This document shows, one piece after another, positions 1 to 36,871 of a DNA stretch of 64,000 bases. The notes below the pieces were generated by a model. That model was given only the letters and a program-made list of their open reading frames with translations. It was not told the origin of the DNA and did not search any database. A program made the position numbers and the translations under genes. The number at the start of each line of letters is the position of its first letter. The stretch's first letter is position 1. The DNA is taken from sequence record PQ657772.1, one strand, 5' to 3'.

Positions 1-140
1 TAACGCCTTTGTACTGTCTATATAAATTCAACTGCGTATATTGCCTTTGATCAAGAATTGATCAGAATTATACGCCTTATGCTAAATTGATCCAGTACTT
101 TTTGATCATTTATTGATCGATATTATATAGTTACATTTGT

Positions 141-209
141 GCACCCTATGGGTTAGTGACGTTCTCGTCTTGATGTAAGTATTATGCCAGTACTGGAGGA
201 TATTGTCAA
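141..209 (-). ncRNA. promoter-driven ORF-less two-hairpin element, copy A
   Basis: TTGACA(204-209)-17-CATAAT(181-186), then CATCAAGACGAGAACGTCACTAACCCATAGGGTGC; no RBS or ORF. Confidence 0.5.
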
Positions 210-213
210 TAGA

Positions 214-417
214 TTATTTTAATTTTTTTCTGTCATTGATTAATGCTTTCAGTACTATACTAATAACTTGCAATGATTCATCAATGACAATGAAATTATT
301 CTCTTTCATTAGATGATAGTTACCATTGATTGTATATTCTAACGAGTACTGTTTACGTTTAATTTTTGATAATGTTTCTATTTGTTTTTGTACTGATTTC
401 ATGCTAATCATTGTCAA
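214..417 (-). CDS. hypothetical protein
   Basis: 67-aa ORF; no clear RBS. Confidence 0.4.
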   Translation of the reverse strand: MTMISMKSVQKQIETLSKIKRKQYSLEYTINGNYHLMKENNFIVIDESLQVISIVLKALINDRKKLK

Positions 418-480
418 ACGTCCTGTAACGCATTCTAACGAGATAAACGGTTGAGTACTGGCATTGTATAGGGTAAATGA
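417..480. repeat. dispersed ACGCATTCTAACG-core repeat
   Basis: 417-436 identical to 3414-3433; core shared with 10203-10215. Confidence 0.6.
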
Positions 481-482
481 TT

Positions 483-512
483 ATAGCCCACCAGCGTTAA
501 CCAGTGGGCTAT
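483..512 (-). terminator. intrinsic terminator-like hairpin
   Basis: ATAGCCCAC...GTGGGCTAT inverted repeat just after a stop codon. Confidence 0.6.
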
Positions 513-516
513 AATA

Positions 517-660
517 TTACATCTTGCGGATAATCTTAACAGTATCTTTCACCGATTTACCGTTTTGCTGACATTGCTCGATCATCGCGTATTGTTCTGC
601 GGTCAGATCCTCGCCAGTTTTTGCCAGTACTGCGTCGATGAATGAATCCAGTGCGATCAT
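517..660 (-). CDS. early hypothetical protein (47 aa, MIALDSFIDAV...)
   Basis: hand-translated; GAGAG RBS; own promoter 705-732. Confidence 0.7.
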   Translation of the reverse strand: MIALDSFIDAVLAKTGEDLTAEQYAMIEQCQQNGKSVKDTVKIIRKM

Positions 661-750
661 TTTGTTTCTCTCTTAGGTTAAGTTAACTACTGTTTATAAA
701 ACTTATTATACAGTACTATCAAACGTTGTCAATAGTACTGGTAATATATT

Positions 751-930
751 TTAGCGGTAGTCGTCGTATGCTTTATTCACCTGGCGAATGTAACTTTCAA
801 AGGCTTCGTCTACCGTTTCATACTCCCGAACATAATCACCATAGGAAACTACATACATACCTTTTTGATCTTCAAACGTCATGATGATAGAATCCAGACC
901 AACGATTTCAGTTTTTGCGATGATAGCCAT
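751..930 (-). CDS. early hypothetical protein (59 aa, MAIIAKTEIV...)
   Basis: hand-translated; AAGGA RBS; own promoter 966-994. Confidence 0.75.
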   Translation of the reverse strand: MAIIAKTEIVGLDSIIMTFEDQKGMYVVSYGDYVREYETVDEAFESYIRQVNKAYDDYR

Positions 931-954
931 TTTTTAATTCCTTAGTAGTGTAGT

Positions 955-1016
955 TGATAAAAGTTATTATGTCAGTACTATCAAACTATGTCAATAGTAC
1001 TGTGATAATATTTTTA
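955..1016 (-). promoter_or_regulatory. sigma70 promoter cassette, duplicated at 4349-4410
   Basis: TTGACA-17-CATAAT; 62 bp with 1 mismatch to 4349-4410. Confidence 0.8.
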
Positions 1017-1226
1017 GTTAATGATAGTCAGTGTAAAATTGTAATCACCGCAGCGATATAGCACGTTATTCCCAAATGTCCCAACTAATCGCACATCACA
1101 CAAAACGCCGGTTTTTTCTTTTACTTCCTTGATACTTGTAACTCCTGTAATATCTTTATTAAAGTATTCATGATCTGAAAATAAAACTTGTTTTGCATTT
1201 TTTAATTTCGACCGGATATTAGCCAT
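1014..1226 (-). CDS. early hypothetical protein
   Basis: ORF with RBS behind promoter 1281-1308. Confidence 0.8.
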   Translation of the reverse strand: MANIRSKLKNAKQVLFSDHEYFNKDITGVTSIKEVKEKTGVLCDVRLVGTFGNNVLYRCGDYNFTLTIIN

Positions 1227-1247
1227 TTTGTTTTCTCTCTCTGTTAG

Positions 1248-1308
1248 TGGGGAGAAGTTTTTCTCCCCTTGATGTAAACTATTATACAGTACTATAATCT
1301 ATTGTCAA
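1248..1308 (-). promoter_or_regulatory. early promoter plus 5' stem-loop cassette
   Basis: TTGACA-16-TATAAT, then GGGGAGAA-AAC-TTCTCCCC hairpin at transcript start. Confidence 0.8.
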
Positions 1309-1322
1309 ACTATTTTTTTATA

Positions 1323-1664
1323 TTATTCGAAATCTTCTGGACCGGACTGATAATCATCTTCACCGTATGCACTTTCTAACCGCTCGCCAGTGTGATCATC
1401 AGTTAGTGAGTCATCCTCATAGTTCACGTCTACGCCAGTGATGTAAAACTGGCTATCGTCTGGATCATTGAAATTAATTTTTTGGATGTTTACAATAACT
1501 GTATTGATACCCAGGACACCGCCATCAGCCGTTACAAAGTACTGATATTTTTCACAACCGCCTGAATTGAAACCGTAATTAATTTCAGCCCGACCATCAT
1601 TTAAACGCAGTGCCTGGGCGATGATTTCATTTTCAAAGTTAGATTGAGCAATTGAGATAGTCAT
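1323..1664 (-). CDS. acidic early hypothetical protein
   Basis: ORF, RBS, promoter 1716-1743; D/E-rich C-terminus. Confidence 0.8.
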   Translation of the reverse strand: MTISIAQSNFENEIIAQALRLNDGRAEINYGFNSGGCEKYQYFVTADGGVLGINTVIVNIQKINFNDPDDSQFYITGVDVNYEDDSLTDDHTGERLESAYGEDDYQSGPEDFE

Positions 1665-1746
1665 GATTTGTTTCCTTATTACCAGGGGAAACCGTTTCCC
1701 CTTTCGATGTAAAACATTATACGCTTATCAGGAAGTAATGCAAGTA

Positions 1747-2214
1747 CTATTTCACGTTAATTTCAAAGTACTGCTCTTTGATGTTTTCCTGTTGGTAAAT
1801 CTCGTTTAATGCTTTAAGATCTAAAACCTGTTTACCTGCTGCCTGAATATACTTTTTAAGAGTCGCTAACAGCTTCTCAGGCGTGTTTGTAGTCTTACGT
1901 GTTGGGATCTTATCGTGCCCCATAGCGTAGTACTGCTTACGTGCTATAGTACTGATAACACTGCGGTACGGTTCCATGATCAGCTTGTCTGTGTATTCGT
2001 CGCTATCCCCAAACTTCATACCGTGGATCGCAAAGGTCATCATCATGCGGTCGTTATCGCGGATATTGTGGGGGCAGTCGGCAAGCTCGCGAGTCAGTGA
2101 CATAGTGATCCCCACGTCGCCACCCAGCGGTAAAGGTCGGGCGATAAAGAAACCGTTAGGGAATACTTTCAGGAAGTTTTCTTGAACTGCTGCGACGAAT
2201 TCGATGCTATTCAT
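1747..2214 (-). CDS. early hypothetical protein
   Basis: 155-aa ORF, AAGGA RBS, promoter 2267-2294. Confidence 0.85.
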   Translation of the reverse strand: MNSIEFVAAVQENFLKVFPNGFFIARPLPLGGDVGITMSLTRELADCPHNIRDNDRMMMTFAIHGMKFGDSDEYTDKLIMEPYRSVISTIARKQYYAMGHDKIPTRKTTNTPEKLLATLKKYIQAAGKQVLDLKALNEIYQQENIKEQYFEINVK

Positions 2215-2349
2215 AATTCATTTCCTTAATTAGTGGGGTAAGTTGTTTCCCCTCTCGATGTAAAACATTATACGCTTATTGAGATAGTTTGCAAGTACTT
2301 TTTAAAAATAGTTTTCAGTACTCAATACTCATATAATAGATACACTTAT

Positions 2350-2416
2350 GCACCCTGTGGGCTAGTGAGCTATCTCTCAATGAATATATAATAGCAAAAT
2401 GGCTGACCGGAGTCAA
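2350..2416 (-). ncRNA. promoter-driven ORF-less two-hairpin element, copy B
   Basis: TTGACT-17-TATTAT, then GAGATAGCTC-ACTAG-CCCACAGGGTGC. Confidence 0.5.
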
Positions 2417-2425
2417 CCACTTTTT

Positions 2426-2569
2426 TCATTTATTTTTAGCTTTTAGAATCGCCGCCTTTCGCGTCATGCCTTGCTTGATGTATTCTTGTACTTTCGCTTT
2501 ACGTGCATTCGCTTTATTTGCTTTCGTAAATGCCGAACAACTTTTATAGTTTAAACCTGTTGGATTCAT
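2426..2569 (-). CDS. basic hypothetical protein (47 aa)
   Basis: hand-translated MNPTGLNYK...KAKNK; abuts upstream stop. Confidence 0.65.
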   Translation of the reverse strand: MNPTGLNYKSCSAFTKANKANARKAKVQEYIKQGMTRKAAILKAKNK

Positions 2570-2659
2570 TTAAATCACCATAAAGAATAGATAGGTTACT
2601 AACAACGCCGCGATCAATGCACCGACCAGGGCCGAACTATAGTAAGCTAATGTTTTCAT
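2570..2659 (-). CDS. 29-aa single-TM peptide
   Basis: hand-translated MKTLAYYSSALVGALIAALLVTYLFFMVI; ATGA overlap. Confidence 0.6.
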   Translation of the reverse strand: MKTLAYYSSALVGALIAALLVTYLFFMVI

Positions 2660-2808
2660 TTTTTAGCCTGAAAGTAATGTTTAATTTGAGCGGCGGTCAG
2701 TGCACAATTACGCAGGAAGTTTTCTGTATAACTTTTGCGAGTACTGAAAGAGAATTGACCTTTGCCGTTACCGATAGTAACATCAAACCGAGCGTTGTAT
2801 TGTTTCAT
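2656..2808 (-). CDS. early hypothetical protein
   Basis: start moved to MKQYN (AGGAG RBS); promoter 2859-2886. Confidence 0.75.
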   Translation of the reverse strand: MKQYNARFDVTIGNGKGQFSFSTRKSYTENFLRNCALTAAQIKHYFQAKK

Positions 2809-2889
2809 TTTGATTCTCCTGTTATTGGGGAGAATCATTTCTCCCCTTCATGTAAAACATTATACAGTACTAAAAACTAATTGCAAGTA

Positions 2890-3036
2890 CTATTTTTTAG
2901 ATTTACGCAAACTTTCTACCATCTCAGGAGTAAGGCCCGGCGGGTAGGAAACTACTTCATCAACGAAACGTAAAGGGAATACCCCATCTAAGGTTGAACG
3001 TGCTTTCTTAGTATTACTCTTTTTTGATGCTTTCAT
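2890..3036 (-). CDS. early hypothetical protein (48 aa)
   Basis: hand-translated MKASKKSNTK...; AAGGA RBS; promoter 3088-3115. Confidence 0.65.
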   Translation of the reverse strand: MKASKKSNTKKARSTLDGVFPLRFVDEVVSYPPGLTPEMVESLRKSKK

Positions 3037-3105
3037 TTCATATTCCTTAATTAGTGGGGAGAATCATTTCTCCCCTTCATGTAAAACATTATACGCGTTT
3101 AAAAA

Positions 3106-3315
3106 CTAATTGCAAGTACTATTTGAAAGTAAATGCTCATACGCTACATTAACTACGTTTTCAATAACCGACTGTACAGAAAGATCCCCCACGTCCTGGC
3201 TATAGTAGAAATCGCTTACAGTACTGTCATCGTATGCAAATACTTTACCAGGTACTGCATCAATCACATACATATTAACCTTTAAGATGTCGATCTTATC
3301 CTGTACAGTAAGCAT
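3106..3315 (-). CDS. hypothetical protein
   Basis: ORF directly downstream of 3321-3593. Confidence 0.65.
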   Translation of the reverse strand: MLTVQDKIDILKVNMYVIDAVPGKVFAYDDSTVSDFYYSQDVGDLSVQSVIENVVNVAYEHLLSNSTCN

Positions 3316-3320
3316 ATTAA

Positions 3321-3593
3321 TTAACCTTTTAAGTACTGGCTTAAGTAGTCTTGTTGATCTTCGGTGATTGCAGCCATCTTCCCTAGTACTGGATTGATGA
3401 TATAATCCCCTGTAACGTCCTGTAACGCATTCTCAGGCGGTTTAACGGCTGGGGTAGCCATAGCCATTGCCTGGACTTGTTCGACGCTATAACGCTCATA
3501 TAGGCGGCATTCTTCCGGTGTTAACATAGCATCAATGCGTTTCATTGGTTTAATGATGCTTTCGATCTCATTCAGTACTTGATTAACGTTCAT
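3321..3593 (-). CDS. hypothetical protein containing a translated dispersed repeat
   Basis: GGGGA RBS; 3414-3433 matches intergenic repeat 417-436. Confidence 0.7.
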   Translation of the reverse strand: MNVNQVLNEIESIIKPMKRIDAMLTPEECRLYERYSVEQVQAMAMATPAVKPPENALQDVTGDYIINPVLGKMAAITEDQQDYLSQYLKG

Positions 3594-3644
3594 GGTATAA
3601 TCCCCAATATAAGCGGCCTAAATCGACCGCTAACGATGTTTTGA

Positions 3645-3914
3645 TTAATAGGTGTATGGTTGACGTTCAAACAATGATTGCACGTTGTACGCCCCGCTTA
3701 TGGGCTTTGCTGGTAAATCAATTTTATATTGTTCACGCTTAAAGATAATAAAACGGCAATTGTTTTTAACATCAAAATTGATTGAACGTTCCAGGAGTTT
3801 ACCATCGTGCACAAATACAAGATAACCGCTCGCTACTTGTTTTGTAGTACTGGTTGCAACCATAGACCGCCGAACATGTGTACCTGCGTCGATTAAAGTA
3901 CTGATATTTTTCAT
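3645..3914 (-). CDS. early hypothetical protein
   Basis: GAGGA RBS; promoter 3961-3989. Confidence 0.75.
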   Translation of the reverse strand: MKNISTLIDAGTHVRRSMVATSTTKQVASGYLVFVHDGKLLERSINFDVKNNCRFIIFKREQYKIDLPAKPISGAYNVQSLFERQPYTY

Positions 3915-3994
3915 TATACGTTCCTCTTAAGTTAATTTAATTTCTTTCCCCTATGCAGACACTATATCAAAGTATCTGCATAAAGTAAAGCTAA

Positions 3995-4318
3995 TTAAAG
4001 ATCTTTTTTGCGTTTAACATTCTGTACAGTACAATGCAACGGGATATTAAGATCATTGCACAAACGAGTAAGGGAGGTTTCATCAGTATTAAGCCCGTCT
4101 ACTGATTCCTTTAAGAGATCTAACGCCGTTTGTTGATATGCATCTTCATAGCCATAAGTAAATGATTCAACCGCCAGATCATTCAAACCGTTATCCAGTT
4201 CGACGCTTACATGACAAGAATGATAAGTATTGCCATATGAATCAGTCCAACGTTTACCGTCAACATTGATTGCACGGATTGCAGCCAGGGAAACGGTGTT
4301 AATGATAGTTTTAGCCAT
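3995..4318 (-). CDS. early hypothetical protein
   Basis: AAGGA RBS; promoter 4360-4388. Confidence 0.8.
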   Translation of the reverse strand: MAKTIINTVSLAAIRAINVDGKRWTDSYGNTYHSCHVSVELDNGLNDLAVESFTYGYEDAYQQTALDLLKESVDGLNTDETSLTRLCNDLNIPLHCTVQNVKRKKDL

Positions 4319-4407
4319 TTTAGTATTCCTTAAATTAATATGTTGTCTTGATAAAAGTTATTATGCCAGTACTATCAAACTATGTCAATAGTACTGTGAT
4401 AATATTT

Positions 4408-4551
4408 TTACTTACTTTTTGCTTTCTTGATTGCTTCCACCTGGTCGGCCCATTCTTTACCCCATACTTGTAAATTATAATGGTACTGGCAAAGAGCAAC
4501 GCCCCGCTTTAAACCCGTAATAGATTTCTGACCACATTGACAAGTTTTCAT
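4408..4551 (-). CDS. 47-aa protein with CxC...CxxH (possible Zn-binding)
   Basis: hand-translated MKTCQCGQK...LCQYHY; AAGGA RBS; promoter 4602-4629. Confidence 0.7.
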   Translation of the reverse strand: MKTCQCGQKSITGLKRGVALCQYHYNLQVWGKEWADQVEAIKKAKSK

Positions 4552-4637
4552 TTTAGTTTCCTTGTAGTGGGGAGAACCATTTTCTCCCCTTGATGTAATG
4601 TATTATACTTTATTCGATTTACTTTGCAAGTACTTTT

Positions 4638-4865
4638 TTAATTTAATTCATCAAGGCAAAGGATACGCTCAACGCCCAAATCAGTTAAACTAATCGACGG
4701 CACTTGATAGGTTTCAATGTATGCTACACTTGCCCACTGACCGAACTCATTAACGGCCCAGGTATTCATTGCATTTTGCAATTCCGCACCTTCCTTGTTG
4801 GTAATGACTGCAACTACTTGTTCGTTGCCAGTAGTACCAGATACGCGAGTAATGATAATAGCCAT
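4638..4865 (-). CDS. early hypothetical protein
   Basis: start moved to MAIIITR (AAGGA RBS); promoter 4921-4948. Confidence 0.75.
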   Translation of the reverse strand: MAIIITRVSGTTGNEQVVAVITNKEGAELQNAMNTWAVNEFGQWASVAYIETYQVPSISLTDLGVERILCLDELN

Positions 4866-4974
4866 TGTTTTGATTCCTTTGATTTGGAAGGAGAACCGTT
4901 TCCCCCTCTCGATGTAAAACATTATACGCTAATCTCTTAATCGTGCAAGTACTTTTTATTACTTTTTGCAAAAT

Positions 4975-5075
4975 ACTTTAAACGCTCTCAATCGCGTTCT
5001 TACAGCCTTAACGCCACCAGCTAGGGCAATGCATCAGATAATCAGTTTAATGCGTTAGAATCGTTTCTAGGCGGT
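4975..5075. repeat. dispersed ATTCTAACGCATTAA-core repeat
   Basis: 5047-5061 is the reverse complement of 10207-10221. Confidence 0.6.
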
Positions 5076-5102
5076 GCTGGTGGCCTGGTAAACGATAAAC
5101 AC

Positions 5103-5132
5103 AAAAAAGCCCACCGTTTAAGGTGGGCTAGT
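5103..5132. terminator. intrinsic terminator-like hairpin
   Basis: AAAAAAGCCCACC-GTTTAA-GGTGGGCT. Confidence 0.7.
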
Positions 5133-5150
5133 GATTCAGTACTTTAATTG

Positions 5151-5633
5151 TTATGCTTCAACTTTGCGATGAGATTCGATCCATTCCTCGCGAGTCATAC
5201 CGCTGGCGTTAATCGCGTCCAGTACTACCGCAATGCAGTTACCACGCACCGGAATCAGATATTCTTCCCCGTTGTCCAGTACTACCGCTACGCGTTCCTG
5301 AATCCATTTTTTGGCTTTTACTTCTGGCTTGTCTTCCCCATACTTAACCGCCAGGGCTTTTTGTGCCATCTCTGTAACTACTTCCAGATCCAATCCAACT
5401 ACTGCCGCCTGAATACTTTCGATTGTTGCTTGTAGTTCTGCTTCACGGGCCGCCTTTGCCGCTTCAATTTCTGCCGCTTTATTTGCTTGTAGTTCTTTCG
5501 CAGTACTGTACGCGATGTTAAAATTATTGCGTACCGCTTTCATGGTATCGTTATCCAGTTCAGCCAGGATCTCAGCCGCGACGTTAGTTTCATTTGCTAC
5601 CAGTGCTTTGATGAATGATTTTACATTAGCCAT
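5151..5633 (-). CDS. divergent H-NS-like protein
   Basis: coiled-coil N-half; C-terminal KAKK..VLDNGEE..RGNCIAVVLDAINASGMTREEWI parallels H-NS [34 protein letters not shown] (H-NS sequence recalled from memory). Confidence 0.6.
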   Translation of the reverse strand: MANVKSFIKALVANETNVAAEILAELDNDTMKAVRNNFNIAYSTAKELQANKAAEIEAAKAAREAELQATIESIQAAVVGLDLEVVTEMAQKALAVKYGEDKPEVKAKKWIQERVAVVLDNGEEYLIPVRGNCIAVVLDAINASGMTREEWIESHRKVEA

Positions 5634-5697
5634 TTTATAAATCCTCAATTAAAGTTTAGTTTACGTTTATTAGTGTATCAAAGTTTTCTCGACGTGT

Positions 5698-5732
5698 CCA
5701 GTTTTTCGTTCGACTTACTGGCGGTCTACTTA
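5698..5732 (-). promoter_or_regulatory. conserved 5'-leader RNA motif, copy 1
   Basis: TAAGTAG..CCAGT-AAGnnnnACGAAAA-ACTGG; stem covaries with 8235-8269. Confidence 0.55.
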
Positions 5733-5837
5733 GTGCTCCCCGTCTTGATGTAATACATTCTACGCTTTTCTGCGGTAATGTCAACTACTTTCTTAAAACT
5801 ATTTTCAAAGTATCTCAGTACTACGATACTACAAAAA

Positions 5838-5862
5838 CAAAAAAGCCCACCAGGTGGGCTAT
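5838..5862. terminator. intrinsic terminator-like hairpin
   Basis: AAAAAAGCCCACCAGGTGGGCT. Confidence 0.7.
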
Positions 5863-5866
5863 GTAC

Positions 5867-6097
5867 TTAATCAGTGAGTAAAATATTAAACACTTTACCA
5901 TTTAACGTTATTGGTGCACTGCTACCAGGCACAAGATCCGTTAGTATACCTGCAATCGCTTTATCATTGGCTACCTTTCCAGTGTCCAACAGAACTACAG
6001 TACTGATAAGATTAACGCTCGTTTCAATATCATAATGCACGGCGTTAAGTAGTTGTGTAGTACTGCTTTCGTTAAGTAAAACAATTCGCTTAGTCAT
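5867..6097 (-). CDS. hypothetical protein
   Basis: ORF with GGGG RBS. Confidence 0.75.
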   Translation of the reverse strand: MTKRIVLLNESSTTQLLNAVHYDIETSVNLISTVVLLDTGKVANDKAIAGILTDLVPGSSAPITLNGKVFNILLTD

Positions 6098-6118
6098 GAT
6101 GTTACCCCGTAGTATCTA

Positions 6119-6418
6119 TCAACGGCAATTAATAACGCCGGTATGAGTTACTTTCTCGGTATCCATAACAGTGACCGAACCGCGTTTAGTACTGGCATCA
6201 TAATAAATTGTTGTGCTACCGTTTTCGTCTTCTTCATGGAACGGGCCGTTTTTAAATGCTTCCGGCTGGATCTCTAAATCCTTTAATACAATCTCGCCAG
6301 TTCTTTCATCGGTCATTGCAACAGTGCACTGAATGAATTTTTCACTACTTACATCTAATGACGCATTAACAGCGAAAGAGGAAACAGATAAAGCCAGGGC
6401 GATGATTGCAATTTTCAT
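6119..6418 (-). CDS. exported (signal-peptide) two-Cys protein
   Basis: MKIAIIALALSVSSFAVNA leader; Cys near both ends; promoter 6469-6496. Confidence 0.8.
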   Translation of the reverse strand: MKIAIIALALSVSSFAVNASLDVSSEKFIQCTVAMTDERTGEIVLKDLEIQPEAFKNGPFHEEDENGSTTIYYDASTKRGSVTVMDTEKVTHTGVINCR

Positions 6419-6501
6419 TTGATTATCCTTAGTTACCAGGGGGAACCGCTCCCCTTGCGATGTAAAATATTATACAGTACTAAAAACTATTATCAAGTAC
6501 T

Positions 6502-6738
6502 TTATGATTTTTTATAAAACATTTCAGCCGTGATATTTTTACCCGTTGGTTGTACTTTATCCAGAATTTTTTGATGCCCAGGCCGTCCAAATGAATATGA
6601 TCCGTAAACCGTAAACCAGTAGTTACCCTCAGTGTTTACATGTACAGCACAATAGGGTACACCCCGCGATTCATCACTAGTAAAGTGTACTACCGTTCCC
6701 GTTACATTCGCAGACGTTGATTTGATTTGTTCAAGCAT
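6502..6738 (-). CDS. early hypothetical protein
   Basis: AAGGA RBS; promoter 6786-6813. Confidence 0.8.
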   Translation of the reverse strand: MLEQIKSTSANVTGTVVHFTSDESRGVPYCAVHVNTEGNYWFTVYGSYSFGRPGHQKILDKVQPTGKNITAEMFYKKS

Positions 6739-6846
6739 TTTATTATTCCTTAGTTACCAGGGGAACCGCTCCCCCTATGCAAAACATTATACGCGTTTAA
6801 AAACTAATAGCAAGTATTTTAATAAAAAGTATTTGAAAAATAGTTG

Positions 6847-6930
6847 TTGACAAGTGCATCCAGTACTGGCATAATTATTACATCAAGACGAAACAGTCAC
6901 TAACCCACCGGGTGCCGAGATCCGTCTATT
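6847..6930 (+). ncRNA. promoter-driven ORF-less two-hairpin element, copy C
   Basis: TTGACA-17-CATAAT, then CATCAAGACGAAACAGTCACTAACCCACCGGGTGC; runs into hairpin at ~6957-6977. Confidence 0.55.
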
Positions 6931-6981
6931 AAATGATTCAGTACTGAAAAAGTAACGGGGAGTTATTATCTCCCCGCGTTG

Positions 6982-7203
6982 TTATTTTGTAAGGTATAAA
7001 CAGAAGTCACCTTTATTTGCTACGCCGCCAGTGTAACGCGAGGAATAGTTAGAAACGTCCTGGACTTCTGCTATTACCAGGGTATCATCATTCAATTCGT
7101 CGCAGAAGCAAACGGCTGGATCTTGTACGCCGATTTTGTCGGCATGTTCCCGCATAGATTTAACCAGTGCTTCCAGTTGGGAAAGAGTAGTGATATTAGC
7201 CAT
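6982..7203 (-). CDS. early hypothetical protein
   Basis: start moved to MANIT (GAGGA RBS); promoter 7254-7281. Confidence 0.8.
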   Translation of the reverse strand: MANITTLSQLEALVKSMREHADKIGVQDPAVCFCDELNDDTLVIAEVQDVSNYSSRYTGGVANKGDFCLYLTK

Positions 7204-7291
7204 TTTATTTTCCTCATTACCAGGGAGAACCATTTCTCCCTTTGATGTAAACCATTATACAGTACTGAAAACTAATTGCAAGTACTTTCTA

Positions 7292-7456
7292 TTATTTTTT
7301 TAGATCTTCCAGTACTTCTGCGATAGCATCACAAAAATTATTAATTACATCAGGGTGAATGTCAACATTGTCAAATAAACCGCTTTCAGTTGCATCCCGC
7401 AAAGCATCAGACAATACATCCAGGGCGTTCAATTGAGCGAAGGTAAAAGTATTCAT
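7292..7456 (-). CDS. acidic early hypothetical protein (54 aa)
   Basis: hand-translated MNTFTFAQLN...; GAGGA RBS; promoter 7509-7536. Confidence 0.75.
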   Translation of the reverse strand: MNTFTFAQLNALDVLSDALRDATESGLFDNVDIHPDVINNFCDAIAEVLEDLKK

Positions 7457-7548
7457 TTGTAGTATTCCTCATTAGTAGCTGGAACTATTCCCGCTCTCGA
7501 TATAAAGTATTATACGCTTTTAAACTTAGTTTGCAAGTACTTTTTAAA

Positions 7549-8160
7549 TTAATATTCGATTGATTCCACTACGCCATCAATAACATTGAATTGATACTCG
7601 TTACCCTCAATCAGTGCCGTAATGTTTTCAGTAGTGAATTGATCCTCATATGCATTCTCTAAATCACGGTACAACTTGCGGGACAATTCACGAATAGTTT
7701 CAGTGAGTAGTTCCTCAAGCTCATTAACTAACGTTTCTTGTTTTGCGGTTAAATCAGTGTAAGCCGATTCAATGTACCCGCTTACAGTATTCTCATGCGA
7801 GTAGTGGGAGTGCGAACGTTTTACACTCATCGCCAAATCATCTTCATTCAGCAAGTGACGGATTGAGCGATACTTAGTTAATGCTCTTACCTTGCGTAAA
7901 AACTTCACTGCGTCAACGTGGTCAGTACTGATTGATGCACCGTCACCCTGGGACCAAAAACCACTGAATTGTATTTCAGCGTCATTAATGCCATATTCCG
8001 GTAGTACTGTTTCTTTATAGTATTCAATTTCACTTTCAGAAAAATAATTGTCGTTTGAGTTTTTTTCACGTTCCCGAACCAGTTCGATAGCTGACGTTTT
8101 TTGTTCTGCGTTCAATTCAGAAAAATCCATAACGAAAGTAGTAGTAGTGATAGTTTTCAT
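7549..8160 (-). CDS. hypothetical protein with FSGFWSQGDGA motif
   Basis: 203-aa ORF; GAGGG RBS; promoter 8193-8220. Confidence 0.85.
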   Translation of the reverse strand: MKTITTTTFVMDFSELNAEQKTSAIELVREREKNSNDNYFSESEIEYYKETVLPEYGINDAEIQFSGFWSQGDGASISTDHVDAVKFLRKVRALTKYRSIRHLLNEDDLAMSVKRSHSHYSHENTVSGYIESAYTDLTAKQETLVNELEELLTETIRELSRKLYRDLENAYEDQFTTENITALIEGNEYQFNVIDGVVESIEY

Positions 8161-8234
8161 TTTGTAACCCTCATTCAGTAGTTTATGTAAGTATTATACG
8201 CTTTTAAAAACAATTGTCAAACTATTTTATCAGG

Positions 8235-8269
8235 GGAGTTTTTCGTGTGCCTTACTCCTGGGCTACTTA
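8235..8269 (-). promoter_or_regulatory. conserved 5'-leader RNA motif, copy 2
   Basis: TAAGTAG..GGAGT-AAGnnnnACGAAAA-ACTCC, downstream of promoter 8311-8338. Confidence 0.55.
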
Positions 8270-8384
8270 ACGGGAAGTTACTTATTTCGTTCCCCGTCCT
8301 GATGTAAAACATTATACGCCTTTAAACATAGTTTGCAAGTACTTTTTAAAAATAGTTTTCAGTACTGAATAGTAAAAAAAAGTA

Positions 8385-8460
8385 TTGACAGCATTATCAA
8401 GTACTGGTATAATATACCCCATGACAACAGCTAACCCACCGGGTGCACAATTGTAACTAT
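8385..8460 (+). ncRNA. promoter-driven ORF-less element, copy D
   Basis: TTGACA-17-TATAAT, then ...CTAACCCACCGGGTGCACAATTGTAACTATA (3' extension shared with copy A). Confidence 0.5.
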
Positions 8461-8480
8461 ACTAAACTAATTTTTCTATA

Positions 8481-8557
8481 GATACACTCCCGCACCCTAT
8501 GGGCTACGGCTTATCTGCCAATGAATACATTATGCCAGTACTGACAAAATAAGTCAA
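8481..8557 (-). ncRNA. promoter-driven ORF-less element, copy E (convergent with D)
   Basis: TTGACT-17-CATAAT, then GGCAGATAAGCC-GTAG-CCCATAGGGTGCGGGAGTGTATC. Confidence 0.5.
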
Positions 8558-8587
8558 TACCGGCAATTGTAAAGATTTGTAAACTGC

Positions 8588-8824
8588 TTATACTGCAATC
8601 GCGTCCAGGCTATAATAATAATAAGTGCCGTATTGGTGTACTTTATTACCTTTTATTTCAGTACTGAATGAATCCGAACGGTTTGCATATGATGTTAATT
8701 TAAAGTACTTTGATTTGCTGATACGTTGCCATACACCACAGATCCGCTGTAAGTAAGTAGTTTTATTCGTGGTAGTATCTTTTACGGTTTTAACTTCAGT
8801 CATATACATATTAGTCATTTTCAT
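8588..8824 (-). CDS. early hypothetical protein
   Basis: GGAG RBS; promoter 8871-8898. Confidence 0.8.
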   Translation of the reverse strand: MKMTNMYMTEVKTVKDTTTNKTTYLQRICGVWQRISKSKYFKLTSYANRSDSFSTEIKGNKVHQYGTYYYYSLDAIAV

Positions 8825-8905
8825 TACTCCAGGTTATAGGCGGGAAGAGTTCCCGCTCTCGATGTAAAACATTATACGCCTTTAAACATAGTTTGCAAGT
8901 ACTTT

Positions 8906-9172
8906 TTATTCAAGTACTGCAATCTTTTTAGTACGGTACACGGTCACGCGGTTGCCCTTTCGGTCGAGCTTTATTTCTACCACTCGACGCGATACACTAT
9001 CGGGACTTTTTAAGGCCGCTAACCAGTACTGTAATGATCTGGCGGTACTACGCTTTACAATGGCCCAACGTTCACCACTTGCCGATCCCGCTCCCATATC
9101 TTTAAACGTTGCCCCGTCCTGGCGTGCGGCGATCCGAGCTTGTTCACGCGTCGCAAAATACTTAATATTCAT
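8906..9172 (-). CDS. basic hypothetical protein
   Basis: start moved to MNIKY (AGGG RBS). Confidence 0.75.
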   Translation of the reverse strand: MNIKYFATREQARIAARQDGATFKDMGAGSASGERWAIVKRSTARSLQYWLAALKSPDSVSRRVVEIKLDRKGNRVTVYRTKKIAVLE

Positions 9173-9258
9173 GCTGTTGCCCTTATCGTTGGTGTATGAA
9201 TAAAACACTATTATAAAGTACTATCGCAAAAAAATGATAGTACTTTAAATAAATTCTA

Positions 9259-9498
9259 TTACATTCCAACCATCGCCGCACGGATCGCAGTAGTGCTATA
9301 TTTGAATCCGTCCGGTGTTTTATCTTGTCCAGTCTGTTCTAAAAATAACATCATATGACGGGCCGCATCATTGCGATTAGTGTTGTCGTTAATAAAATCC
9401 AGGGCCAACCGATACAATCCCTCATCGTTATTAATCCACAGGCTTACATTCCAATGAGTTTTGTTTTTGTGACCTAAGAACATTTTTGATTTAGCCAT
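9259..9498 (-). CDS. hypothetical protein with WNVSLWINNDEGLY motif
   Basis: GAGGA RBS; promoter 9552-9579. Confidence 0.85.
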   Translation of the reverse strand: MAKSKMFLGHKNKTHWNVSLWINNDEGLYRLALDFINDNTNRNDAARHMMLFLEQTGQDKTPDGFKYSTTAIRAAMVGM

Positions 9499-9593
9499 TT
9501 TTTTTTAATCCTCTTATATAGTGGGGAACTATTCCCCACCTGATGTAAAACATTATACGCCATTAAACATAGTTTGCAAGTACTTTATTAAAC

Positions 9594-9956
9594 TTATTTG
9601 TAAATTTTGCCACTGTCAGCCCATACCAGGAAACGAGGCATATTATCCCATGCATCTTGTTTTAAGTTTAAGCCGTGCAATTCCTCAGTTGTTGCCATCC
9701 CTGGTACTGGCTTACTACACACCGCGAAATTTTCGCCCATATACTGATAAACCATCGTCAAATCATTTGAGATCATTATATGGATCATTGAATCCAGCAT
9801 CAAAGTAGCGGCGTATTGTTCACGCTTAAGCGGCAACATTGCAATAAGTTCCCGATAAGCTGCAATGTGAATTTTTACAGTTTCAGCCGGAAGACCTTTC
9901 ATCTCATCGCGGAAGTTTACCAGGTTAAGCATGATTTTATTGATTTGAGTCGCCAT
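9594..9956 (-). CDS. early hypothetical protein
   Basis: start moved to MATQI (GAGAG RBS); promoter 10012-10039. Confidence 0.8.
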   Translation of the reverse strand: MATQINKIMLNLVNFRDEMKGLPAETVKIHIAAYRELIAMLPLKREQYAATLMLDSMIHIMISNDLTMVYQYMGENFAVCSKPVPGMATTEELHGLNLKQDAWDNMPRFLVWADSGKIYK

Positions 9957-10070
9957 CGTTTTAATCTCTCTTAATGTGTAGCGGGAAGTGTTCCCGCTCT
10001 CGATGTAAAACATTATACGCTTTTATCAGTACGGTGCAAGTACTTTCTACAAATACTTTTAAAATAGTTT

Positions 10071-10167
10071 TCTTTCTATATAGGAGTACTATTATTCAGT
10101 ACTGAATCAATCCAGGGGAACTATCTTTCTATATAGGAGTACTATTATTCAGTACTGAATCAATCCA
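10071..10167. repeat. perfect 44-bp direct repeat
   Basis: 10071-10114 = 10124-10167, 9-bp spacer; two AGTACT per unit. Confidence 0.95.
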
Positions 10168-10184
10168 CTAAATCATCCCTATAC

Positions 10185-10292
10185 CCCGTAAAACGGCCTC
10201 AGACGCATTCTAACGCATTAATACACATAAGCTATACATTTGCACCATTCCAATCATTCCAGGGCTTTACAGGCCGTTTAAACGCGTTAAAT
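10185..10292. repeat. dispersed ACGCATTCTAACG-core repeat with imperfect inverted ends
   Basis: AACGGCCT...AGGCCGTT ends; core shared with 428-440 and 5047-5061. Confidence 0.6.
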
Positions 10293-10319
10293 TATTTTCA
10301 ATTATTTTGTTTTTAGGTA

Positions 10320-10400
10320 TTGACTTGATCCTGAAAAAGCGTATAATTACTACATAGACGCGAGAAAGCGGATACCCCAGGGGGTGGGAAGATCCGTCCA
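10320..10400 (+). ncRNA. promoter-driven ORF-less element, copy F
   Basis: TTGACT-16-TATAAT; GCGAGAAAGC hairpin; CCCCAGGGGGTGG; GATCCGTC shared with copy C. Confidence 0.45.
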
Positions 10401-10421
10401 AAATTCAAGATATAAAAAAAG

Positions 10422-10501
10422 GATACACTCCCGCACCCTAGCAGGTAAACGCACTTTCTCAGTACTGAAATATAGTACCATAGTCCGGCCCAGGATAGCA
10501 A
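10422..10501 (-). ncRNA. promoter-driven ORF-less element, copy G (convergent with F)
   Basis: TTGCTA-18-TACTAT; GTACTGAGAAAGTGC hairpin; AGGGTGCGGGAGTGTATC shared with copy E. Confidence 0.4.
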
Positions 10502-10535
10502 GCAAATTAATTAAAACTTTTTTGCTTCCAGGGTA

Positions 10536-10612
10536 TTGCTTTATTTTTTCAGTACTGTATAATAGTTCCATCAAGTCGAGAAAGACTCAAGCCCACCGGG
10601 TGCATAGTTACG
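10536..10612 (+). ncRNA. promoter-driven ORF-less element, copy H
   Basis: TTGCTT-16-TATAAT; CATCAAGTCGAGAAAGACTCAAGCCCACCGGGTGC. Confidence 0.55.
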
Positions 10613-10786
10613 CCCAAAATTCAGTACTGAAAAAATTTTTAAAAATATCCGGCCAGGCCGTTGACATTGCCCCCAGTTTATAAGATAATGATTCCAGATT
10701 CAGAAAAATCTAACACCAGATACTGCGGGGAAACTATCCCCACGCGGTAGGGGAACTATTGGAAAAAACAAAATAAAATTTTGATT

Positions 10787-10898
10787 TAGCCGTCTATACT
10801 TCCAGACGTGTAACCATCTAGCCGTTTAGCCGTCCAAACGTCTAGCCATCCAGCCATCCAGAAATCTAGCCGTTTAGCCGTTTAGATGGATAGCCATC
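10787..10898. repeat. degenerate 8-bp-period tandem array (YAGCCRTY)
   Basis: units at 10787, 10811, 10819, 10827, 10843, 10851, 10867, 10875, 10891, all in 8-bp register. Confidence 0.85.
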
Positions 10899-11300
10899 TT
10901 TACTTCCAGACTTCTGGAGGGCTAGACATATCTACGCCCAAAATCCATCCAGGGTAACTACACCCAAAATCCGTCAGTACTATACCATAGATCTATCTTT
11001 TGAAAGGGAGTATTCAGTACTGCCATCATAGCCCTCACTATGTTACCCTAGGAGGATGAAGACCATCATGTAGTACTGAATACTGTTAGAGGGAATCCAC
11101 CAGCTTGTGCTGGTGGCATAATGCTTTAGATTAAAATCAGTACTGACACCATTCTGTTAATATCAGTACTGTTATTACGATTTTCATATGAGGTTCAAAA
11201 AGATGTACCACCACAGGAGGAACTATCTTTTCTGTACTGTCTCACGACAGGAGGTAGAGTAAATGAATTGTTCGCAGCAACTCATCACCCTATGTAGAAC

Positions 11301-11328
11301 ATTATACAGTACTGAATCATAAAGTCAA
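11301..11328 (-). promoter_or_regulatory. sigma70 promoter firing into ORF-free DNA
   Basis: TTGACT-16-TATAAT with CAGTACTG abutting the -10 box. Confidence 0.7.
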
Positions 11329-11801
11329 TAACTTTCTTTCATCTTTCAGTACTGATATTCTTGAGAACTACCCGACTACAAACATCATTATATCCCACAA
11401 ATCATAAACGTCCCAACGTAAATTTCAACTTTCGAAGATCCAACTTTTATTTCATAGGTACTCCAAAATTTTTAGGATCGAGATTTAGGATGGAGTACTA
11501 ACCAACTTTTTGCTGGAGCCTCAAGGGGTAATGGAATTTTACCCCGAAGGGTAAAGGGGTAATTGAAATTAAGGTGAAAGTAATAATTCAGTACTAATCA
11601 TTGCGTGATTACTTTTGATTACATTTGATGTAATTTGCAAAATGGAAAAGGAGCTTGGAAACTACAAAGTACGGCAGACTTCCTCTGCCTACTTAGTGGG
11701 ATATCGCCACCTTCAGTACTGAATACTTTTAGGGCAGTACTGCTACGTTCTTGATTAAACGTGCACATTCCTGTACTCTATTACACTCTGGTACTCAATA
11801 C

Positions 11802-14793: not shown

Positions 14794-14804
14794 TTGGTTT
14801 TCCT

Positions 14805-14984
14805 TTATACAGATGCGAGTGCGAGGATTTCCCTGAAGGGATTATCTTTTGTTAGTGCGTGATGAATGCAGCTATTGAGATTAATATTTTTAGTACTGTT
14901 AGTTGCCAGGTTGTAGTACTTCACGAAGGTGTCGTACATGAAACGGTCTTTAATGCTTATGTGTTCTATATAGTATTCTTGCAT
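14805..14984 (-). CDS. ~60-aa tandem paralog 12/21
   Basis: hand-translated MQEYYIEHI...FREILALASV (59 aa). Confidence 0.8.
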   Translation of the reverse strand: MQEYYIEHISIKDRFMYDTFVKYYNLATNSTKNINLNSCIHHALTKDNPFREILALASV

Positions 14985-14992
14985 ATTATTCC

Positions 14993-15181
14993 TTACATAG
15001 AGATGAGTTTCAGTACATCAATATACATATAACGTTCAGATGACAGTACACGGGTAGTGATAATCTCAATCGATATATTTTTAATTCCATGTGCAGATGA
15101 TTGATGGTGCTGAATAAATGAGTTGTGCATACTTTGTTCTATGTGGTTTAGTTTATTGAAGTAGTACTCAAAAGTGTTCAT
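14993..15181 (-). CDS. ~60-aa tandem paralog 13/21
   Basis: family motifs; close to copy 15. Confidence 0.8.
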   Translation of the reverse strand: MNTFEYYFNKLNHIEQSMHNSFIQHHQSSAHGIKNISIEIITTRVLSSERYMYIDVLKLISM

Positions 15182-15188
15182 GTCTACC

Positions 15189-15368
15189 TTAGATTAAGAT
15201 TAGTTTAAGTACTTCTCTGTACGTGTACTTTTCGTTTTGTGCTTCTACTGTACATGATAGTAGGTATCGTTTTTTATCTCTTTTGTTCCCGACTGTGTAG
15301 TACCTTTGGAATTTATTATAGTTGTATCTATCTTTGTGCTGGAGGTTATAGATATAGAATTCTTGCAT
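15189..15368 (-). CDS. ~60-aa tandem paralog 14/21
   Basis: hand-translated MQEFYIYNL...YTYREVLKLILI (59 aa). Confidence 0.8.
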   Translation of the reverse strand: MQEFYIYNLQHKDRYNYNKFQRYYTVGNKRDKKRYLLSCTVEAQNEKYTYREVLKLILI

Positions 15369-15376
15369 AGAGTACC

Positions 15377-15562
15377 TTATATTGCTATCAGTTTGAGTAC
15401 TTCAATATATGTGCGGTACTCTGCTTTAATTAAATTTGTACACACTGTAAGGGAATTTCTTTGTATAAGTTTATTGCCGCTTTTATACGCATTTCTCCAC
15501 ACATAGAGATGAGATCTTTCAGGCATAGATAGTTTATTTGTATAGTACTCAAATGTATTCAT
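15377..15562 (-). CDS. ~60-aa tandem paralog 15/21
   Basis: family motifs. Confidence 0.8.
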   Translation of the reverse strand: MNTFEYYTNKLSMPERSHLYVWRNAYKSGNKLIQRNSLTVCTNLIKAEYRTYIEVLKLIAI

Positions 15563-15570
15563 ATATTACC

Positions 15571-15753
15571 TCAAATAGAGATTAGTTTAAGTACTTCTCT
15601 GTATGTGTACTTTTCGTTTTGTGCATCTCTTGTGCTTGTATATAGGTATCCTCGACGATATTTGTTGCTCCCGTTCTTGTAGTTGAATTCGAACTTATTG
15701 TAGATGAATCTATCGCCAGGCTGTAATTTACTTAAGTACAATTCAATGCTCAT
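15571..15753 (-). CDS. ~60-aa tandem paralog 16/21
   Basis: start moved to MSIELY; close to copy 14. Confidence 0.8.
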   Translation of the reverse strand: MSIELYLSKLQPGDRFIYNKFEFNYKNGSNKYRRGYLYTSTRDAQNEKYTYREVLKLISI

Positions 15754-15763
15754 AGTATTCTCT

Positions 15764-16158: not shown

Positions 16159-16169
16159 ATAGTACTCTT

Positions 16170-35966: not shown

Positions 35967-36033
35967 ATCGTATCTCCGGTGGTGAATATTAAGTTATAGT
36001 ACTACCATAGTGTAGTACTGTCAATACATGTAA

Positions 36034-36804: not shown

Positions 36805-36832
36805 TTCGTTATCCTCATCAGTTGATGAAATA

Positions 36833-36868: not shown

Positions 36869-36871
36869 CCT

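Follow-up and report, generated by a model that had tools for sequence, protein, structure and literature searches.

Repeated promoter-driven elements in the direct terminal repeat of Escherichia phage EC.P1 belong to a conserved family of putative non-coding RNA cassettes

The first 64,000 nucleotides of the record of Escherichia phage EC.P1 (bases 1-64,000 of PQ657772.1, 356 kb), hereafter referred to as the window, harbor a set of short, similar elements that possess a promoter and no gene, and the question raised by this locus is what such elements might produce. EC.P1 is a 121Q/PBECO4-like jumbo myovirus belonging to the genus Asteriusvirus. A previous inspection of the window (the sequence-only reading) had pointed out eight of these elements, each described as a promoter followed by two hairpins without any open reading frame (ORF), and had proposed that they represent a family of small RNAs. 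All eight (copies A to H) were retrieved by a family profile, which recognized no other locus in the window. As judged from the sequences, the original observation is stronger than stated, the copies of EC.P1 being eleven, restricted to the direct terminal repeat (DTR), and conserved throughout the clade.

The core of the element, CCCNNNGGGTGC, occurs six times in exact form in the 64 kb against 0.05 occurrences expected, and always below position 10,700; the degeneration of the core previously reported for copies F and G is also real (CCCAGGGGGTGG and CCTGCTAGGGTGC, respectively). The family profile is a sequence-only covariance model constructed on 28 copies from EC.P1, Klebsiella phage fENko-Kae01, and RaK2, that is, from three genera. 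Its matches in the window, with E values from 1e-6 to 4e-12, are exactly eight, located at 119-177(-), 2325-2386(-), 6879-6938(+), and 8410-8471(+) for copies A to D, and at 8468-8526(-), 10351-10411(+), 10409-10468(-), and 10568-10625(+) for copies E to H. Three further copies (I, J, and K) are located on the other side of the origin of the record, at positions 348,707, 351,462, and 354,474 of PQ657772, all on the minus strand. No copy was found in the remaining 52 kb of the window nor in the 40 kb beyond the DTR on the origin side (about 93 kb together). The results of the profile search thus give a total of eleven copies in EC.P1, every one of them in the DTR. The borders of the latter were derived from two related records: the homologous region is annotated as a direct terminal repeat of 21.5 kb in vB_Ec-M-J, and the record of fEgEco12 begins at about window position 11,693. 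Hence, the EC.P1 repeat spans window positions 1 to ~11,690 and, across the origin of the circular record, its final ~9.3 kb, for a length of about 21 kb, with the physical genome end on the right (~11,693). This DTR is an experimentally verified one.

The sequence-only reading had indicated a covariance model and an Rfam search across related phages as a way of checking the proposal; such a search recovered the family in related phages and gave no Rfam match. Considering all the phage loci fetched, 113 profile matches, 93 of which are distinct, were obtained from at least five related genera, their sources being RaK2, GAP32, CBB, 121Q, fENko-Kae01, and putative fHe-Yen9-04-type contigs. Ten copies are embedded in the DTR of fENko-Kae01 and about nine in RaK2. 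Copy C is 77-99% conserved in 52 phage records, Klebsiella phages included, and is ~77-80% identical in Klebsiella, Salmonella, and Erwinia phages belonging to genera that share only ~29% average nucleotide identity with Asteriusvirus (PMC13070987). An exact-pattern scan of IMG/VR disclosed matches in putative RaK2, GAP32, 121Q, CBB, and fHe-Yen9-04 contigs and in metagenomic fragments. Since the family is among the few nucleotide-level features common to at least five genera, it is under strong constraint.

The same exact pattern, searched in 185,579 species genomes (596 Gb of bacterial sequence), gave 70 scattered single matches, which is about the chance level, and none of them in Enterobacterales. 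A strict promoter (TTGAC-N18-20-ANNAT) ending 18-45 nt upstream of GGGTGC accompanies ~75 of the ~100 phage cores vs. none of the 70 bacterial chance cores. A blastn search with a single copy (K) against 5,426 complete E. coli genomes retrieved no match at E values up to 10. Rfam 15 gave no match at gathering thresholds on the 64 kb window; with E values up to 5, positions 1-11,800 gave unrelated matches far below threshold, none of them on the element core. Annotation of the element loci is absent from the public phage records inspected. On the basis of these sequence comparisons, the eight elements truly belong to a family of promoter-driven, putatively non-coding RNA cassettes that is conserved and had not been described before, and this family is restricted, as far as the searched sequences indicate, to the long terminal repeat of RaK2/121Q-like jumbo phages.

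The alignment of the promoters of 30 copies from the three genera revealed an A-tract, the hexamer TTGACW, a 17-nucleotide spacer often ending in TG, and the hexamer (T/C)AT(A/T)AT, followed by seven bases and then by the predicted start at the A of CAT. A near-consensus sigma70 promoter had been attributed to each of the eight elements. This applies to six of them: the promoter scan gave 11-12 of the 12 consensus positions for A, C, D, and F and 10/12, with an extended -10 TG, for B and E. The promoters of G and H are weaker and stand outside the set listed by the scan. Downstream, the conserved module occupies a fixed promoter-proximal position, from +15 to +55. It opens in ~70% of the copies with a small hairpin (hairpin 1), present in 59 distinct copies and in seven of the eight window elements, copy D being the one without it; where the hairpin is missing, an equivalent A-rich sequence (GAAAACA or similar) is left unpaired. 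Hairpin 1 has purine-rich loops of 6-8 nt (AGAUAA, GAGAAA, AGAACAA, GCGAAA) and ends 4-5 nt before the RCCC core in 54/59 copies. That its stems differ from copy to copy and still pair is borne out across the relatives, where 28 different stems are found at the same fixed position. The 5' segment is followed by CUAR, by CCCAYN-GGGUGC, by five or six mostly purine bases, by GYRUYY (mostly GUAUCU or CCGUCU), and by UAUWRU; (U)UCAGUACUG is often located 25-35 nt 3' of GGGUGC, the six nucleotides referred to below as the hub. The 3' extensions shared pairwise by A and D, C and F, and E and G, already noticed, are real.

Might the elements encode short peptides? Their description as ORF-less is essentially right, although micro-ORFs or start-stop pairs of 1-13 codons follow GGGTG in copies A, B, D, E, and G; no ORF beginning at the 3' end of the window elements exceeds 13 codons. 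One could imagine that the elements are leaders of micro-ORFs or decayed gene starts, with GGGUG acting as a Shine-Dalgarno sequence placed five bases before AUG, GUG, or UUG, and the geometry GGGUG-N5-RUG does occur in six of the eight window copies, where it yields start-stop pairs (ATGTAA in A, TTGTAA in D) or the peptides MYL*, MYLLYEY*, and MYPFFIS*. The putative start position, however, is a start codon in at most 54 of the 93 distinct copies, and is thus not conserved: it is a G in only those 54, and ATC or GTC are common there. The length and the sequence of the peptides are not conserved either, and the putative Shine-Dalgarno sequence is paired in both of the folds described below. 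A leaderless ORF of 4-5 codons at the 5' end (AUG AAA ACA ... UAA) was rejected as well, since the frame is kept only in part of the short-type copies and is lost in D and a number of other copies. A coding role of this kind is therefore scarcely credible.

The variation of the module bears directly on the nature of the molecule on which selection acts. Among the 93 distinct copies, the GGG of the hub and the following U are conserved in 93/93, and the G at the fifth position in 92/93. The hub takes part in two helices. The first (H2a) joins R25-C26-C27-C29 to G36-G37-G38-U39, forming a triloop hairpin of 4 bp (RCCC/GGGU) in which 97.6% of the cells are paired; its outer pair varies between A-U (41 copies) and G.U (42 copies), and at its inner pair three U.G variants occur along with two double changes from C:G to U:A. 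RNAalifold selects H2a unaided. The second helix (H2b) joins G36 to C41 with columns 48-53 (GGGUGC/GYRUYY, 6 bp, rich in G.U), with 91.2% of the cells paired vs. 32-65% if the partner is displaced by 1-3 columns. Partner columns 49, 50, and 52 display 62 transitions and 0 transversions, with Y kept opposite G and R opposite U; the flanking columns 55-62 vary mainly by transversion. About 45% of the H2b cells are G.U or U.G, that is, C.A mismatches on the opposite strand, so that the constraint is specific to the sense strand, as expected of an RNA and not of a duplex-DNA site. The two helices are mutually exclusive and have similar median energies (-3.7 kcal/mol for H2a and -4.4 kcal/mol for H2b), with H2b being the more stable in 52/93 copies. 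The pattern of substitutions shows selection on RNA structure, the RNA itself being predicted. As for the two-hairpin design originally proposed, hairpin 1 stands, and the CCC-NNN-GGG segment is better described as a bistable hub (RCCC/GGGU vs. GGGUGC/GYRUYY) than as a single second hairpin.

The same data weigh on the idea that the elements act as DNA, i.e., as a binding site of 30 bp for a promoter regulator or a recombination/packaging factor, or as a patch of homology for the recombination of cassettes similar to the PeSL elements of T4-type phages. The GGGTG invariance (93/93 distinct copies) exceeds what the helices need, the cores are found in both orientations and as inverted pairs, the ORFan array in which they are embedded is plastic, with copy A falling within an indel between close relatives, and PeSL motifs have been proposed as recombination substrates (PMC2839356). 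The variation in the three H2b columns is, on the other hand, strand- and wobble-specific, which is unexpected for duplex DNA; moreover, the hairpin 1 stems covary, the core always lies past a promoter of the same orientation and within a narrow range of distances from it, and the distance between hub and terminator is fixed. A DNA-level role is thus improbable.

A sequence similarity with the terminators of the array was also observed. The region's ordinary intrinsic terminators, such as those at 481-516, 5108-5129, and 5844-5860 on the minus strand, consist of TAGCCCAC(C)...(G)GTGGGCTA, and the 8-mer of their left arm (CTAGCCCAC) also makes up the 5' half of the hub core. On this similarity, the hub core may be derived from a terminator arm.

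The orientation of the elements relative to the genes, which in the DTR of EC.P1 all lie on the minus strand and read away from the physical end, was examined for 102 copies with distinct contexts; 42 of them oppose the genes and 60 run gene-wise. A predicted intrinsic terminator is located within 140 nt of the hub in 20 of the 42 opposing copies and, in ~15 of these 20, a G/C-rich hairpin that starts 39-46 nt past the hub corresponds to the bidirectional terminator of a convergent gene. Most of the other opposing copies face a gene-wise copy, as in the pairs D/E and F/G of EC.P1, 1002/1077 and 7278/7346 of fENko-Kae01, and 14774/14853 of RaK2; in each of the three genera, one convergent pair is found ~1 kb away from the physical end. 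The convergent partner genes are mutually unrelated, and so the RNA cassette appears to be independent of the neighboring gene. This layout might recall the OOP RNA of phage lambda, with opposing copies controlling the convergent gene that they overlap and convergent pairs silencing each other via double-stranded RNA. The terminator shared with the convergent gene and the conservation of convergent pairs in three genera are in line with such cis-antisense regulators. The lack of relationship between the partner genes, the position of the conserved hub outside the overlap, and the 60% of copies that are antisense to nothing make them very unlikely. A regulator of one specific neighboring gene was rejected, again because the convergent partners are unrelated.

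A terminator of their own is rare among gene-wise copies, the exception being H2b directly followed by a U-run (in at least five copies besides G, whose predicted RNA measures ~52 nt). An own promoter and an own terminator, with no conserved ORF, are found in the window in C (terminator at 6956-6976) and in G (10438-10414), and not in A, B, D, E, F, and H. In 33 of the 60 gene-wise copies (B, I, J, and K in EC.P1) vs. none of the 42 opposing ones, the -35 box is embedded in an upstream terminator hairpin, so that the read-through would be stopped just where the element's own transcript begins; this enclosing hairpin is absent from A, C, D, E, F, G, and H. The common denominator of all these classes is, according to the predicted transcripts, an RNA that carries the module at its 5' end.

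The gene-wise copies suggest a different role, that of a cis-acting leader or attenuator, in which H2a would be an anti-terminator and H2b, with its U/A-rich tail, a weak terminator or pause deciding the read-through into the next cassette; alternatively, the module might stabilize the 5' end of the messenger RNA (mRNA). The mutual exclusion and roughly equal stability of the helices, the fixed promoter-proximal position, the U-run that makes H2b score as a terminator in G and at least five copies, and the location of 60/102 copies just upstream of the promoter of the next gene all speak for this possibility. The U-tract after H2b is, however, missing in most copies, and every downstream gene examined in the window has a consensus promoter of its own, so that an additional leader would not be needed for its expression. 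Furthermore, 42/102 copies oppose the genes and have nothing to regulate, ~15 of them ending at once in a strong terminator, the profile does not match nutL, nutR, or tR1 of lambda, and no corresponding cis-regulatory family exists in Rfam. A leader function is possible but rather unlikely.

The reading that we tentatively favor is that the elements are early cassettes like the PeSL of T4, whose payload is a 5'-terminal RNA module instead of an ORF, probably a binding or titration RNA. Judging from the quality of the promoters and from their location, the host sigma70 polymerase would transcribe the elements once the terminal repeat enters the cell. From the opposing copies, which are closed by a terminator or face a convergent partner, free RNAs of ~50-110 nt would arise, and the gene-wise copies would read on into the next cassette, with the module at the 5' end of the transcript. 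About 11 copies per repeat, 22 per packaged genome, might flood the cell with one invariant motif in the first minute. The hub might be recognized by a factor conserved across the enterobacterial hosts or in these phages, either to titrate it or to tag the transcripts, and the switch between H2a and H2b might set which face of the hub is exposed. The very early expression originally envisaged is consistent with the location of the elements in the DTR behind consensus host promoters. As regards the small-RNA family proposed, the repeated, ORF-less, promoter-coupled elements, the sense-strand pairing that tolerates G.U, and the small-RNA gene layout of the opposing copies all agree with it; the expression part is a prediction.

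Several observations weigh against this favored reading. No transcriptome of Asteriusvirus or of a RaK2-like enterobacterial phage was found, and promoters and terminators are predictions. The sequence searches disclosed no binding partner or target, and the scans of E. coli and bacterial genomes no host homologue; no recognizable RNA-binding domain was detected among the 30 DTR proteins tested, almost all of which are ORFans. The H2a stem positions are nearly invariant, so that covariation there comes from few events, and the counts reported above are counts of sequences and not of independent events, the copies being related. The hub is buried in both folds, which is unusual for a base-pairing seed. 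Pairing to phage mRNAs gave no excess of complementary sites in the window, and the best duplexes with E. coli 16S and 23S rRNA are scattered (mean z of -0.3 and -0.95, respectively). The 60% of copies without a terminator of their own leave room for a cis role on the downstream mRNA. Homology to the ncRNAs from the DTR of Pseudomonas jumbo phage PA5oct, considered below, was rejected, since the hub motif is absent from ncRNA001, the one of the two that was read.

A bolder version of the titration idea would see in the family a new class of "first-responder" RNA, present in ~22 copies per genome, made within seconds of entry and before any phage protein, that captures or reprograms a conserved host factor and is gated by the hub switch. 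Candidate factors would be a defense sensor, a ribonuclease or RNA-end-modifying enzyme, the RNA polymerase, or the ribosome. This version is regarded as doubtful.

How do the elements compare with known systems? The closest likeness is to PeSL (PMC2839356, PMC4122927), which share with them near-consensus sigma70 promoters with an A/T-rich upstream region, the fusion or overlap of the promoter with a G/C stem-loop terminator (here, A5-GGG...CCC-T3 encloses the -35), and the many repeats in an early region that is rich in ORFans and prone to indels. Their nt-1 type, A3-4G3-loop-C3T3-4 (PMC2839356, PMC4122927), resembles the A-run/GGG...CCC/T-run stem found here, and the neighboring cassettes, correctly described as carrying ORFs, are ordinary PeSL-plus-ORFan cassettes with a consensus promoter and a 5' hairpin. 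Unlike the eight elements, however, a PeSL ends in the Shine-Dalgarno sequence and start codon of a gene; the conserved module (hairpin 1, CUAR, CCCAYNGGGUGC, GYRUYY) appears in no PeSL description, and its conservation between genera greatly exceeds that of the genes around it.

The DTR of PA5oct, distantly related to the RaK2-like phages, harbors two ORF-less RNAs of 236 and 451 nt (ncRNA001 and ncRNA002), accounting for 2.4-5% of the phage reads in early and middle samples, with ncRNA002 at 1.2% in the late one; they are single-copy, and no promoter was recognized by the authors (PMC7318152). The likeness lies in abundant ORF-less loci within a long terminal repeat; it counts in support of the favored reading, and these RNAs, together with the short lambda transcripts considered next, are the closest analogues in functional terms. 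The OOP RNA and the short PR' (6S) RNA of lambda are likewise short, ORF-less phage transcripts made by the host polymerase from a constitutive promoter with a nearby terminator, and OOP converges on the 3' end of a neighboring gene, as copy C does; but they are single-copy and without a shared sequence, and OOP works via the stretch in which it is antisense to its neighbor. In the present family, the region of overlap does not include the conserved part, and the partner genes are not the same. The lambda nut boxA/boxB and HK022 put sites also place small purine-loop hairpins in the nascent RNA just past early promoters. They differ in that no N-like protein was recognized among the 30 DTR proteins tested and that many copies lack downstream genes. 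Homology with nut, boxC, or tR1 of lambda, suggested by a resemblance, was discarded, as the unfiltered profile run over lambda positions 35,000-39,000 gave no match at nutL, nutR, or tR1.

Sponge or decoy RNAs (CsrB/RsmZ, pseudo-ToxI, Racr) resemble the family in presenting many copies of a short motif in small hairpins, expression being here only predicted; they differ since the copies are dispersed transcription units and not tandem repeats within one RNA, and the family lacks the GGA loop motif of the Csr type. No evidence came to light for a decoy function, nor for the link to ToxI and Racr put forward by the sequence-only reading. A type III antitoxin (ToxI, with ~36 nt tandem repeats by ToxN) would imply a tandem array, absent at the elements, and a toxin-like neighbor, and no ToxN-type protein was found among the 30 DTR proteins tested. 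A Racr-like mimic of host RNA was rejected because copy K has no match, CRISPR-repeat-like sequences included, in the 5,426 E. coli genomes at the sensitivity of BLAST, and the bacterial matches are at chance level and promoterless. A pseudoknot between the hairpin 1 loop and the 3' block (AGAUA/UAUCU) was rejected, as it fits only the AGAUAA loops; where the loop is GAGAAA or AGAACAA, the 3' block does not change to match. CsrA-type GGA sites, the anticodon stem of tRNA-Thr, the consensus pause signal, and Fur control gave short resemblances only.

RaK2/121Q-like jumbo phages are candidates for phage therapy, and more than 80% of their genes and their whole early programme are uncharacterized; the family would be the first conserved non-coding part of this programme. 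It is tractable, being short, with an invariant hub of 6 nt, two testable helices, and natural variants that would lock one state (copy G). Should the RNA bind a factor of the host or of the phage, the takeover of the host would begin with the action of an RNA and not of a protein; should it be a cis switch, it would represent a minimal attenuator of a new kind. In either case, PeSL-type cassettes would be able to carry RNA payloads, which current annotation pipelines miss.

The individual copies show how the common design is varied. Copy C (6847..6990, plus strand, 41.9 bits) is, on its predicted signals, the best stand-alone small-RNA gene among the eight. Its -35 and -10 boxes lie at 6847-6852 and 6870-6875, its start at ~6882, hairpin 1 at 6887-6898, the core at 6904-6915, and the downstream partner CCGTCT at 6922-6927. 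These are followed by CAGTACTG at 6939-6946 and by a bidirectional terminator stem at 6956-6976 with a U-rich tail; the predicted RNA, of ~95-107 nt, faces against the genes, and the convergent gene lies at 6982-7233.

Copy A (127..209, minus strand, 42.5 bits) is oriented gene-wise, upstream of a DksA/TraR-type zinc-finger gene. Its -35 is TTGACA (209-204), its -10 CATAAT (186-181), and its predicted start at ~174; hairpin 1, GACG-AGAA-CGUC, spans 169-158, the core 152-141, and the partner GTAACT 134-129. Copy A and its flank are present in EC.P1, vB_Ec-M-J, and 121Q and absent in G17, where the flanking genes abut. Directly downstream of it, window positions 45-122 contain at least six GATC in ~80 bp, three of them as TGATCA, a cluster reminiscent of Dam/SeqA-controlled sites such as P1 pac or oriC, by analogy; GATC is enriched in the DTR (48 vs. 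28 expected) and depleted in the rest of the window (70 vs. 142).

Copy B (2336..2423, minus strand, 44.2 bits) has a terminator hairpin of 12 pairs (2423-2396) enclosing the -35 TTGACT (2416-2411). The -10 TATTAT (2393-2388), the start (~2381), the hairpin 1 UGAG-AGAUAG-CUCA, the core (2361-2350), and the partner GTATCT (2343-2338) follow. Nearby, the small ORFs 2426-2569, 2656-2838, and 4408-4551, all on the minus strand and coding for 47, 60, and 47 aa, have no annotation in the EC.P1 record; the first and the third correspond by position to 47-aa genes of the relatives (EcMJ_023, EcMJ_015, G17_00039), and the second has no counterpart of the same length in them.

Copies D and E are convergent, with 45 bp between their cores. 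The former (8385..8460, plus strand, 37 bits) has a 12/12 promoter with TG, a start at ~8420, AUGACAACAG in place of hairpin 1, the core at 8435-8446, and the partner GTAACT at 8453-8458. The latter (8478..8557, minus strand, 39.4 bits) has its -35 TTGACT at 8557-8552, its -10 CATAAT at 8534-8529, a start at ~8522, the hairpin 1 GGC-AGAUAA-GCC, the core at 8503-8492, and the partner GTATCT at 8485-8480. Close to this pair, a second putative ORF-less, promoter-driven structured RNA of ~90 nt (CAUCAGGACGGGGAACGAAAUAAGUAAC...CCCCUGAUAAAAUAG) is located at 8217-8338 (minus strand), between a TTGCAA-N16-TATAAT promoter and the next consensus promoter, with a second DTR copy across the record origin, also on the minus strand; a related long leader (5640-5784, minus strand) precedes the gene 5151-5633.

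Copies F and G are convergent as well. Copy F (10320..10400, plus strand, 30.2 bits), which points to the physical genome end, has its promoter at 10320-10347, a start at ~10354, the hairpin 1 CGC-GAGAAA-GCG, the degenerate core CCCAGGGGGTGG at 10376-10387, and the partner CCGTCC at 10394-10399. In copy G (10413..10501, minus strand, 27.1 bits), a weak promoter (TTGCTA-N18-TACTAT), a start at ~10465, and the hairpin 1 GUACU-GAGAA-AGUGC are followed by a core that has lost the upstream pairing (CCUGCUA); with H2a at +1.5 and H2b at -6.8 kcal/mol, only the downstream helix is predicted to form. This helix (GGGUGC/GUAUCC, 10438-10421), together with the U7 at 10420-10414, constitutes a predicted intrinsic terminator, and the scan lists a terminator-like site at 10439-10420. 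Copy H (10536..10625, plus strand, 30.8 bits) has a TTGCTT-N17-TATAAT promoter, a start at ~10571, the hairpin 1 AGUC-GAGAAA-GACU, the core at 10592-10603, and the partner ACGCCC at 10610-10615; it also points to the physical genome end (~11,693), and its 3' extension recurs at 10927-10975. A perfect direct repeat of 44 bp (10071-10114 and 10124-10167, spaced 53 bp), with two AGTACT sites in each unit, separates the first gene of the array from the F/G/H cluster. Past copy H, an outward consensus promoter (TTGACA-N17-GATAAT; 10661-10760, plus strand) is followed by the hairpin AGAUU-CAGAAA-AAUCU and by G/C hairpins, without hub and without ORF.

As for the genes among which the elements are scattered, nearly all those of the DTR are small ORFans, each with its own consensus promoter and 5' hairpin. 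Out of 30 DTR proteins tested, 27 gave no Pfam match above threshold, and the families recognized in the other three were a DksA/TraR zinc finger, a GNAT acetyltransferase, and DUF7249; a search for tRNA and tmRNA genes was negative.

Other features of the DTR and of the related phages deserve mention. No Fur-box-like site within four mismatches is present in the EC.P1 DTR part, which has two matches with five mismatches only. Near-Fur-box palindromes (best 16-17/19, e.g., GAGAATGATAATCATTTAC) lie between convergent hub pairs in fENko-Kae01 (775, 2342, 7309) and RaK2 (14804-16162), and a Fur-box-like palindrome is repeated ~7 times in the terminal non-coding region of RaK2. The palindrome AGTACT occurs 253 times in the 64 kb vs. 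~22 expected, and 79 times vs. 3 in the DTR part (e.g., 10094-10107, 10459-10473, 10619-10634); it could be a genome-wide site for protein binding or modification. CAGTACTG is found 57 times in the window vs. ~1 expected, within promoter spacers (CCAGTACTGG, preceding the -10), immediately 5' of the -35 (AGTACTTGCAA), and, in 38/102 copies, 25-35 nt past the hub.

The E. coli Chi sequence GCTGGTGG or its complement is present ten times in the window vs. ~0.6 expected, with five occurrences in the 11.7 kb DTR part; the sites are at 488, 5014/5076, 11097/11109, 18329, and four more positions, and others flank copies I and K. Inverted pairs forming hairpins are found at 11097-11116 (CCACCAGC-ttgt-GCTGGTGG) and at 5014 with 5076. 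These sites may be tied to the attack of RecBCD on linear ends or to recombination between the repeats. Lastly, an array of ~12-14 imperfect units of 8 bp (TAGCCGTT, TAGCCATC, CAGCCATC, and similar) spans positions 10787-10902, within a non-coding stretch of 1.7 kb by the physical end, and is a candidate for a role in packaging, end recognition, or the control of DNA entry.

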